A stretch of 63,893 nucleotides of DNA, the filler included, from Ministeria vibrans ATCC 50519 (Eukaryota > Protista > Filasterea), in NCBI GenBank assembly GCA_943704425.1. It is 8 parts of 8 records of this genome, joined end to end, with 100 filler letters (N's around TTAATTAATTAA, not from the genome) between each part and the next. Parts side by side here need not be neighbours in the genome. Positions count along the whole stretch, not along the records: positions 24,243 to 43,061 come from CALSCP010000016.1; 7 more parts are not named here. One strand, given 5' to 3'. Every line of letters starts with the position of its first letter. Positions within the stretch are counted from its first letter, which is position 1. The position numbers and the translations under genes are program-made. Under the pieces are notes generated by a model, which worked only from the letters and a program-made list of their open reading frames with translations, did no database searches and was not told where the DNA came from. Positions 38,801 through 41,800 of this stretch are shown here, piece by piece.

Positions 38801-41800
38801 AAGGACGGCTACGCTGGTGTGGGATGCGCTTCGGAACGGGACGAGTGTGACTCGTCGCCGTGCAGCAACGGCGGTGTGTGTACGGACCAGTTTAATGGCT
38901 TCACTTGTGCTTGCGCGACTGGCTTCACCGGCGTCCTGTGTGTATCTAACATTGACGAGTGTGTGTCATCGCCATGTGCCAATGGGGCAACATGCAATGA
39001 TGCAGCGAACGACTACGCGTGTGTGTGTGCTGATGGCTTCACCAGCGATGATTGCAGCGAGAACGTTGACGAGTGTGCGTCGATGCCGTGTGCCAATGGT
39101 GGATCGTGCACCGACGGCGTTGCAGAATTCAGCTGTGTGTGCGCAAGTGGATTTACCGGCATTACCTGTCTCGCTGATGTGGACGAGTGTGTGTCGCAGC
39201 CGTGTGCCAACGGAGCGTCATGCAGTGATGCAGTGGATGGATTCGTGTGTGTGTGTGCTGATGGGTTTGCCGGCACGCTCTGTGCGACCGACGTGGACGA
39301 ATGCACGTCGATTCCATGCCAGAACGGCGCCAGTTGCGTTGACGGGGTGAACAGCCACGTGTGTGTGTGTGCCCTGGGCTTCTTTGGAGTGCTCTGCGAG
39401 GCGATCACCGACAACTGTGAGTCGTCGCCGTGCAGCAATGGTGCGACCTGTGTGAATTCGGTGGGTGCATTTGCATGCAGTTGCAATGCAGGCTTCACGG
39501 GTGTGTTGTGTGAGTCGGACATTGACGAGTGTGCCTCATCACCGTGCATCAATGGCGCGTCGTGTGTGAATGCCGTGGGCAATACAGTGGCCGAGTGCAC
39601 ATGCATTGCGGGGTACACGGGCGAGCAGTGTGAGACTGACATTGACGAATGCGCGACCTTTCCGTGCGGCGTCGCGAGCACCTGTACTAATCTGGTGGGT
39701 GAGTTCCAGTGCACCTGCCAGGCGGGCTATACGGGCGAGCGGTGTGAGACGGAGATGGACGAGTGTGCGTCGAGTCCGTGCGGCAATGGAGCGTCGTGTG
39801 TCTCGTCAGGTCCGTCGTGGACGTGTACGTGCGCCGCCATGTACACGGGTGAGCAGTGCGAGACGTTTGTTGACAACTGTGCGTCGTCACCGTGCGTCTC
39901 CACCGCGACGTGTGTGAACCTTGATTTTGACTTCTCGTGCACGTGTGCCCCTGGTACCTTTGGCAAGATATGTGACGCGACAGTAGACAACTGTACGCCT
40001 GCGTTGTGTGCCAATGGTGGAACATGCTTCTCGACGACCGCGGGCTTTCAGTGTGCGTGCACCGAGTTCTACTCTGGGGCCACGTGTCTAGAGACGGCGT
40101 GCGACTCGTCGCCGTGCAGCAATGGCGGCACATGTGTGCTGGCCGAGGCCATGTGCGTGTGTCCCAGCACGTACACAGGTGCGCAGTGTGAGACACCGCT
40201 GTGCGGCCATGATCTGGGCACCTACACTGTTCTTCCGTCTTCCCCGCCATTGACCTTTTCCTTCCCCTCGTATGGTCTCAATCTTGTTTTCCCCTCCGGA
40301 GTGGTCTCTGCACCCTTTACCTTCACTGTCACTGTCACCGACCCTAATGTGTGCTCTCTTGACTATGTTGGCACTCTTCCCGTCAATCCGGCTCTCTCTA
40401 GTTTCTTTGAGGTAAAATGAGTTTTTGTCTTTTTGTGTTCTTTTTCCCTCCAGCTCTCTCGATCACTTTGTCTTTCTATTACTTTCTCTATCACTTTCTC
40501 TCTATCACATTCTCTATTACTTTGTCTCTTGATCACTTTCTCTATTACTTTGTCTCTCGATCATTTGTCTATCACTTTGTCCCTATCACTTTCTCTCTCG
40601 ATCATTTGTCTATCACTTTGTCCCTTTCACTTTCTCTCTCGATCATTTGTCTATCACTTTGTCCCTTTCACTTTCTCTCTCTCTCTCTCTATCACTTTGT
40701 TTCTCTCTCTCTCTCTCTCTCTCTCTCTCTCTCTCTCTCTCTCTCTCTCTCTCTCTCTCTCTCTCTCTCTCTCTGTTTCTCTCTCTCTCTCTCTCTCTCT
40801 CTCTCTCTCTCTCTCTCTCTCTCTTTTACTCTCTTACTCTCTCTCTCTCTTACTCTCTCTCTCTTTCTTTTACTCTCTTACTCTCTATAACTCTCACCAA
40901 TTTCTCATACTCTTTCCCACAACGCTTTCTCTTGATTGCTGTTTTGTTTAGCTTGATGGAAGTTCATCTGCGAATTTCAATGGAGCAGGTGTGTTTGTGC
41001 AGCTGAAAATGGCGGCGTATACTTCGGGTGCATCTGTGCTGTACAAGTCGGAAGCGAATGACACAGTTTGGGAAGTGGCCACGGACAAGACAGTGGATGC
41101 AACGCACTTGACTGTGTCTGGTCGACTTGCGCACTTTTCTTTTGTGGGTGCCTTTGACACGTCGCGACTGATTACCAGCACACAGTCGAGTGGAGGTGGA
41201 AGTAATATTGGCATTATTGTGGGTGTGGTGGTGGTACTGCTGCTGTTGCTGCTGATTCTGGTTGTCGTTGTGATGCGTCGCCGTCGGGGCGACGGACACG
41301 CGTCGCGCAAGTTTGTGCCTCGTCAGAGTCTGCAGAGTAACAATTCGCAGATATTTGGATTGGCATTAGGGGAGCGTGAGGACGAAGAGAGACTGGAGCT
41401 GAGTCGTGGCAATTCGTTTGCAATGATGTCGGTGGGAGGGTCCTCTGCGGATCTGAATGAGTCAGCTATGCTTGTGGAGGCCCGACGGCCATCACTGAGA
41501 GGCAGAAGCGTGCTGAGTCTGGGCGGGGGAGGAACACATTTAAGCGAGTCGCACATCGCCGAGCTGTACACACCTTTGGACGTGACGGGGACTGAGCGAT
41601 CGCTTGAAAGTGAGTCATATCAATCGCAGGGAGCGCATGTGATGCCGATGCCGAGTGGCGGTGATCTCTTTGGACGCGATGTGGCGCAGGTAGAAGCAAA
41701 CGATGTGTCCACGCGTGGCTTTAGTCTCTATGAGCCTGTGACGGAGGGTAGTGGTGCTGGCGCTGGTGCGGCACCTTCTTCGCCGTCGGCGAGCGCACGC

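Follow-up and report, generated by a model that had tools for sequence, protein, structure and literature searches.

A candidate self-cleaving ZU5-type module above the membrane helix of a giant EGF-repeat protein in Ministeria vibrans

The window analyzed here is a stretch of 63,893 nucleotides (nt), filler included, which joins parts of eight records of the genome assembly of the filasterean Ministeria vibrans ATCC 50519 (GCA_943704425.1). Its piece 24243-43061 (CALSCP010000016.1) is occupied by one very large gene on the + strand, encoding a type I membrane protein of >4000 residues with ~95 EGF repeats, in which a short module lies between the last EGF repeat and a single transmembrane (TM) helix. 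In the reading that we favor, and to which we assign a probability of roughly 55%, the last ~130 extracellular residues form an autoproteolytic beta sandwich of the ZU5 superfamily, which carries the tripeptide His-Phe-Ser (HFS) in its last turn and serves as the stalk of this single-pass protein. An extracellular juxtamembrane module of ZU5 type is supported by indirect but convergent evidence, namely by the homology of the half encoded in the last exon (exon 2) to modules of two further proteins, which are placed in ZU5 by Pfam profile, by comparison with PDB sequences and by predicted fold. An earlier note on this DNA had proposed an extracellular ZU5 domain with an HFS motif directly above the TM helix; the relatives bear this out for the exon-2 half, while the half encoded in the preceding exon (exon 1) is without significant similarity.

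The juxtamembrane module and its two relatives

The last EGF repeat ends, according to the Cys spacing, at the Cys codon 40202-40204, and the region from there to the membrane is composed as follows:

40205-40411, + strand: 69 beta-rich residues, taken by position and length as the presumed N-terminal half of the ZU5-like module
40412-40951, + strand: intron with GT..AG ends, skipped by a transcript contig in the public run X1
40952-41161, + strand: C-terminal half of the ZU5-like module with an N-D-T sequon, a conserved Trp, TVSG, HFS and the last beta strand
41132-41140, + strand: His-Phe-Ser, at which an N-O acyl shift is predicted to break the bond between Phe (41135-41137) and Ser (41138-41140)
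41141-41206, + strand: strand FVGAF after the site and then a linker rich in Ser, Thr and Gly, read from the translation; the last strand is present in the model of a relative
41207-41275, + strand: single TM helix of 23 residues, directly followed by RRRRG; the Pfam matches to TM segments are weak

The sequence text and the coordinates of the earlier note, including HFS at 41132-41140 and its distance of 22 residues to the TM helix, proved to be exact throughout.

When exon 2 was compared by phmmer to 1.84 billion representative proteins, two matches only were returned, P0001 (E 1.9e-4) and P0002 (E 9.4e-4), both of which extend from LDGSS... through the TM helix, so that the ZU5(HFS) family comprises three members in this collection. 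This rarity is probably the reason why the family has remained undescribed. With the C-terminal half of the module in the relatives, the exon-2 half shares 35-39% identity, and the relationship was recovered by BLASTP (E 4e-9 and 6e-9), by hhalign (95% probability, E 4e-8) and in a shuffle test, in which the score was reached in none of 2000 shuffles. In the alignment of the three sequences (A3) the columns G3, S5, F9, W40, D49, T54, V55, G57, L59, H61, F62, S63 and A67 are invariant, the first three of which represent the 'GP.G..F' stretch of ZU5. His, Phe and Ser of the HFS motif are thus identical in the window, P0001 and P0002, and, as far as the alignment can tell, the motif exceeds a chance occurrence, being invariant among the only detectable relatives. 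Exon 2 of the window contains one N-glycosylation sequon (NDT) and the module of P0001 contains five, which fits an extracellular location of the module.

P0001 (700 residues) and P0002 (745 residues) are both encoded in one Logan assembly, at the loci L001 and L002. Their GC content at third codon positions is 0.75 versus 0.59-0.68 in the window, which indicates that they come from another, more GC-rich organism and led us to reject paralogues from the same organism. Both proteins show the same layout, i.e., a Ser/Thr/Pro/Ala-rich mucin-like stalk, the module of ~135 residues, a short Ser-rich linker, one TM helix and a domain of the tyrosine-kinase type (Pfam PK_Tyr_Ser-Thr, E 1e-74 to 1e-80), and in both the mucin-like frame runs on without a stop to the contig's 5' end (L001:3-2444, L002:2-2434). 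P0001 retains the HRD and DFG motifs; P0002 has HRA and NFG and is for this reason probably a pseudokinase. At L001, the gene of a leucine-rich repeat protein of 971 residues lies 245 nt downstream.

The assignment of the relatives to the ZU5 superfamily is solid because of their matches at the sequence level. Their modules pass the Pfam family ZU5 (PF00791) with 21.7 bits (P0001) and 24.7 bits (P0002) versus a gathering score of 21, and a profile built from the two sequences found the first ankyrin ZU5 domain among the PDB sequences at E 3.7e-6 to 3.1e-5. An AlphaFold2 (AF2) model of the P0002 module (mean predicted local distance difference test, pLDDT, 64; predicted template modelling score, pTM, 0.62) contains a single helix of 6 residues, and in Foldseek its top matches were all ZU5 chains (best E 2.8e-5, 16 at E<=0.001), followed by UNC5b, the ZO-1 ZU5 domain and then GAIN domains. 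A structural alignment of the same model to 48,161 representative chains, performed independently of Foldseek, gave the following values, to be read with the provision that a Z score of ~8 taken alone falls within the chance range of beta sandwiches:

Ankyrin ZU5, ranks 1-3: Z 8.2-8.5 (root-mean-square deviation 2.9-3.3, 112-126 residues aligned)
CD97 and BAI3 GAIN: Z 7.2-7.8
CARD8 and NLRP1 FIIND: Z 5.4-6.2
Other GAIN domains, ZO-1 and UNC5b: Z 4.6-5.7

HFS (residues 126-128 of the P0002 model) is predicted to lie in the turn between the strands 119-124 and 129-135, just before the last strand.

The exon-1 half is 68-69 residues long versus 60-61 residues in the relatives, and it shows a beta-like pattern with five beta-like segments in matching order. 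In BLASTP it aligns to the relatives over one stretch of 18 residues, opposite VQITVPAGSLTTPVTITI (E 0.071), and this stretch resembles the ZU5 pattern 'v.i.vP.Gal..pv.i.i'. From the P-x-G motif to the equivalent of LGPSG there are 45 residues in the window versus 41-42 in the relatives, and the exon junction is in register with them, as ...SSFFE at the end of exon 1 parallels ...IVVLS directly before LGPSGTQFNGSVDVQI. We infer that the exon-1 half completes the ZU5 fold, based on its length, beta pattern, P-x-G...P spacing and junction register and on the consideration that half a sandwich cannot stand alone.

Further searches added no member. The ESM Atlas returned no usable match for the exon-1 piece and only low scores for the P0002 module (0.84-0.86), one of them to a cnidarian ZU5 cluster, which is to be taken as a lead only. 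Pattern matches in metagenome contigs (A2, A3) contained no confirmed relative, and neither did those in 185,579 prokaryotic genomes (GTDB), which were searched with A3 by pattern and tblastn. A word-index homologue search with the EGF exon (2150-2227), with exon 2 and with P0001 (30-200, which found itself only) returned nothing, where the word index and the length window make such blanks uninformative.

Self-cleavage, rigid stalk or partial module

In the mechanism that we consider most likely, the Ser at 41138-41140 would attack the Phe-Ser bond from within the strained turn during folding, with His serving as the base, and the resulting N-O acyl shift would be followed by hydrolysis of the ester at F/S. 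The EGF ectodomain would then be held non-covalently by the last strand (SFVGAF), which stays inserted in the sandwich, until pulling or unfolding releases it, and a stub of 22-23 residues, the TM helix and a tail with tyrosine motifs would remain. Cleavage, continued association of the two halves, force-dependent shedding and downstream signaling would all be consequences of this scheme, and a force-releasable ectodomain combined with tyrosine-based signaling from the stub would be the function that we favor.

Several points weigh against an autoproteolytic module. Most eukaryotic ZU5 domains, such as those of ankyrin, UNC5 and ZO-1, do not cleave. The family has three members only, and the conservation of HFS is inseparable from the conservation of the block TVSG.L.HFS...A[FY]; three sequences are too few to separate a catalytic from a structural constraint. 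The P0002 model is of middling confidence, and its Z scores carry the reservation made above. In the window itself, the Pfam scan of each exon piece alone gave no ZU5 match at E<=10, where the ZU5 profile spans the exon junction, and phmmer of each exon half against the PDB sequences returned no ZU5 domain and only a chance filamin row. For the exon-1 half, hhalign gave no match to the relatives and the shuffle test was not significant (p 0.07 and 0.63).

The alternative that survives best, which we consider possible at clearly lower odds than self-cleavage, is a ZU5 sandwich without cleavage, which would serve as a rigid stalk, a spacer or a membrane-proximal binding platform and would keep HFS for packing, with the Phe buried. 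It would agree with the closest matches in sequence and structure, which are the non-cleaving ZU5 domains of ankyrin, and with the location of HFS in a generally conserved block. An HxS motif without cleavage is moreover documented in the GAIN domain of ADGRB2, which retains HLS yet stays uncleaved (PMC13062082). However, not only Phe but also His and Ser are invariant, and they are found at the very turn that is used by PIDD, FIIND, GAIN domains and the prokaryotic MAIN proteins (PMC3210808; bioRxiv 10.64898/2026.05.12.724683). The module also has a large or mucin-like ectodomain on its one side and the membrane anchor on the other, as is the case for the cleaving members.

It is improbable that the kinship to ZU5 is limited to the exon-2 half, so that the exon-1 stretch would be a linker or another small domain and the whole a partial module without the autoproteolytic fold. 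While neither ZU5 nor the N-terminal halves of the relatives are significantly similar to 40205-40411, one half of a beta sandwich would not be expected to fold by itself, and the length of the exon-1 half, the order of its five segments, its P-x-G...P spacing and its junction, in register with ...VVLS/LGPSG..., all fit a complete module.

Returning to the self-cleaving module, its occurrence in two settings suggests a wider use. Because the relatives contain the same module between a mucin-like stalk and a TM helix with a tyrosine-kinase domain, it behaves, judged by these domain orders, as a portable 'cleavable stalk' cassette. More speculatively, and with considerable doubt, the three proteins might represent a class of protist single-pass receptors in which ZU5(HFS) forms a constitutively self-cleaved, force-releasable joint, and in which the loss of the ectodomain would expose the stub and trigger tyrosine signaling or intramembrane proteolysis. 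Above the joint, such receptors might carry a very large adhesive ectodomain of either ~95 EGF repeats with lectin-like modules or mucin stalks, and below it either a tail with tyrosine motifs or a tyrosine kinase or pseudokinase. Such a class, if it exists, would conceivably be the eukaryotic single-pass counterpart to adhesion G protein-coupled receptors (GPCRs), to the Notch regulatory region and to the SEA mucins, and a sister of the bacterial MAIN proteins.

Gene model, transcript evidence and the remaining protein

The joining of the two halves depends on the removal of the intron between them. The frame open over 33641-40411, which is the penultimate, EGF-bearing exon, ends at a gtaaaa donor, and without splicing the EGF frame hits a stop two codons inside the intron. 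The acceptor ...gtttag ends at 40951, and exon 2 continues in the same phase and in frame with the open reading frame 40991-42193, of which 42191-42193 is the stop codon. Four public runs were compared over 38400-42400, the locus being present in several marine-sample studies. In X1, which is probably cDNA (2011), a contig of 1348 nt omits 540 nt with GT..AG ends; the joint was placed at 40409/40950 and fits equally well 2 nt rightward, i.e., at 40411/40952. This contig reaches 37 nt upstream of the joint and ends at 42260, and the transcript contigs in general end at 42254-42260. No joint 40411/40952 of this kind was found in the DNA runs X2 and X9. The splice from 40411 to 40952 is thus supported by a single contig, and the earlier note, which had named this joint in RNA as a check of its model, agrees with X1 and with the blank in the DNA runs.

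In X5, a putative RNA run with another organism label, a contig (40879-42254) still includes the final 73 nt of the intron, and 40142-40409 has almost no depth, which counts against the favored model at the level of the transcript. This contig may reflect intron retention, an internal start, pre-mRNA or a carry-over of DNA. As the assemblies of X5, X2 and X9 all break at 40879, the edge of a repeat, pre-mRNA or DNA carry-over may account for it.

We regard it as very unlikely that the gene model is wrong, through intron retention, a start inside the intron or a pseudogene, such that the EGF array and the TM-tail exon are not joined in the main product: although the splice is seen in one contig with 37 nt on its short side and X5 retains intron sequence with nearly no depth on 40142-40409, the joint is bounded by GT..AG, keeps the reading frame and does not occur in the DNA runs, without splicing a stop is met immediately, both halves are collinear with a domain that is unbroken in the relatives, and the X5 contig begins where the X2 and X9 assemblies also break.

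The intron 40412-40951 consists almost entirely of a CT-rich tandem repeat, in which periods of 12, 14, 41 and 82 and ~106 TC units were found. This repeat breaks short-read assemblies at 40657-40878, and similar CT-rich repeats are found in other non-coding parts of the piece (25200-25330 and 42750-43061). Two single-base differences to the window were observed. At 40147, in the last EGF repeat, the runs that cover the site (X1, X9, X2) read T versus G in the window (GAG to GAT, Glu to Asp), and at 40585, in the intron, X1, X9 and X2 read T versus A. X5 has no depth at either position, and about half of the depth in X9 carries each difference. Both differences are an allele or an assembly error.

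The remaining parts of the gene are the following:

27107-27418, 27500-31411, 31587-32177, 32257-32967 and 33031-33552, + strand: upstream exons (Cys-rich frames) with EGF arrays and three copies of an unnamed module
33731-40204, + strand: part of the large exon, encoding ~50 EGF repeats and a further copy of the unnamed module (36170-36500); Pfam finds EGF in 49 stretches and nothing else
41276-42193, + strand: cytoplasmic tail of ~305 residues and stop codon, with 0 Pfam families

By motif and Cys count, ~91-99 EGF units are encoded from the exon 27500-31411 through the exon 33641-40411, and the Pfam scan of the exons found EGF-type families only. The apparent exon start at 27107 is preceded by a long poly-T tract and ag. 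The copy of the unnamed module at 27107-27418 is partial, and its first half must therefore be encoded by an exon further upstream; within 24243-27106, no 5' end of the gene with a start codon and a signal peptide was recognized.

The unnamed module is ~105 residues long and occurs among the EGF repeats in four copies (27107-27418, which is the partial one, 27500-27835, 27944-28288 and 36170-36500), which are 23-38% identical (alignment A4) and share two conserved Cys residues. It has no Pfam match. An AF2 model is all-beta (pLDDT 79), and Foldseek returned weak rows of the jelly-roll and carbohydrate-binding module (CBM) type, i.e., Cry11 domain III, CBM35 and a hyaluronan-binding module, at E ~1e-2. 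Judged from this model, it may be a lectin-like ligand-binding unit.

The RRRRG following the TM helix places positive charge inside, which indicates the type I orientation. The tail contains eight Tyr residues, six of which belong to two repeated motif types, Y-x-P-[LV] (41567, 41729 and 41804) and [ED]-Y-x-G-[AI] (41915, 41960 and 42017). In their sequence these motifs look like phosphotyrosine docking sites or YxxPhi sorting signals, and they are unlike the nuclear domain of Notch. The description of the protein as Notch-like in the earlier note accordingly stands for the tandem EGF array and the type I topology and is unsupported for the rest, as Pfam detects no LNR, NOD/NODP or RAM/ankyrin part and the tail looks unlike the Notch intracellular domain.

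Comparison with known systems

In animal cells, self-cleaving juxtamembrane modules such as GAIN, SEA and the Notch regulatory region turn pulling force into signals. The same putative chemistry would occur here in a eukaryotic single-pass form based on ZU5, with ~95 EGF repeats in one organism and with tyrosine kinases in another. If true, this would connect the cytoplasmic ZU5 autopeptidases of animals (PIDD, NLRP1/CARD8) with an extracellular ancestry, supply a fourth way of building a receptor that is "cleaved but held together" and provide a candidate for mechanosensitive tyrosine-kinase signaling in unicellular eukaryotes, and would be of relevance for adhesion GPCRs, Notch, mucin mechanobiology and pre-metazoan signaling. 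In a literature search, no stand-alone ZU5(HFS) module was found in a single-pass eukaryotic receptor, be it with EGF arrays or with kinases, and the phrase "extracellular ZU5" was absent.

That the self-cleaving folds concerned here form a single superfamily was reportedly argued by Liao and colleagues in 2014, in a work known to us by its title. ZU5, GPS and Nup98 have been argued to constitute one autopeptidase superfamily, which also has members among bacterial surface proteins (PMC3482391). PIDD and Nup98 are cleaved at HFS, and in CARD8 and NLRP1 the C-terminal end of the ZU5-like domain carries SF/S, just ahead of a long strand (PMC3210808), while H-X-S/T is the cleavage motif of GAIN domains (PMC13062082). 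Extracellular autopeptidases of the ZU5 superfamily are thus already known from GAIN/GPS, from bacterial ZU5 proteins (PMC3482391) and from MAIN, and as these include extracellular juxtamembrane self-cleaving members, the mechanism is known and the architecture alone is new; the claim of an unprecedented architecture holds for the single-pass design and goes too far for extracellular self-cleavage as such.

Among the ZU5 domains (PF00791), those of PIDD1, UNC5CL and the FIIND of NLRP1/CARD8 served as cleaving and those of ankyrin, UNC5 and ZO-1 as non-cleaving comparators. The module of the window shares with them a kinship in sequence that is established via the relatives, for one of which (P0002) the beta sandwich is predicted as well, and an H/S-F-S motif at the C-terminal end, placed as in PIDD and FIIND in the turn before a long strand. 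To our knowledge, all characterized ZU5 domains of animals are cytoplasmic. The module of the window, in contrast, is predicted to be extracellular and juxtamembrane, and in place of UPA and death or CARD domains it has one strand, a linker and a TM helix behind it. It differs also in its N-terminal half, which is too diverged for recognition.

The GAIN-B/GPS domains of adhesion GPCRs and PKD1-like proteins resemble the module in their extracellular location directly before the membrane anchor, below large adhesion ectodomains that include EGF arrays, and in the H-hydrophobic-S/T motif in the turn that leads into the last strand; in GAIN, this strand stays bound after cleavage. The structural similarity, measured with the P0002 model, reaches Z 7.2-7.8. 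Nevertheless, the module is unlike GAIN in having neither the helical subdomain A nor the GPS cysteines (exon 2 encodes no Cys), and the protein has one TM helix versus seven in adhesion GPCRs and 11 in PKD1. With a single TM helix, a tethered-agonist (Stachel) mechanism would have no obvious receiver. A GAIN domain proper was rejected on these grounds, as subdomain A, the GPS cysteines and a 7TM region are all missing, with only ~130 residues between the last EGF repeat and the stub.

SEA domains (MUC1, and MUC3/12/13/17 with flanking EGF domains) and the Notch regulatory region share with the module the juxtamembrane position in a single-pass protein, the role, proposed for the module, of creating a non-covalent heterodimer that can be separated by force, and mucin-like or EGF-rich ectodomains. 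However, their fold and their chemistry or site are unrelated to those of the module, as SEA has an alpha/beta fold and a G/SVVV site, and Notch is cut at S1 by furin. Pfam detected no LNR, NOD, ANK, SEA or GPS domain across the exons, the juxtamembrane pieces and the tail. A SEA domain was rejected, as 40205-41206 contains neither a Pfam match nor a motif of the G/SVVV type, and so was a Notch LNR/HD region, for which there were no LNR, NOD or ANK matches and no motif.

The bacterial and archaeal MAIN domains are stand-alone GAIN-B-like domains in which HFS is cleaved at F/S, as shown by Edman sequencing, with the products staying associated (Brogan and Rudner, bioRxiv 2026, 10.64898/2026.05.12.724683). 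Like the module described here, they place an HFS sandwich between a large adhesion or enzyme ectodomain and an envelope anchor, and a release by force has been proposed for them as well. They differ in being prokaryotic and in using sortase or other envelope anchors, and since the 185,579 prokaryotic genomes contained no sequence relative, any kinship between MAIN and the candidate self-cleaving module of Ministeria vibrans would be at the level of the superfamily only.

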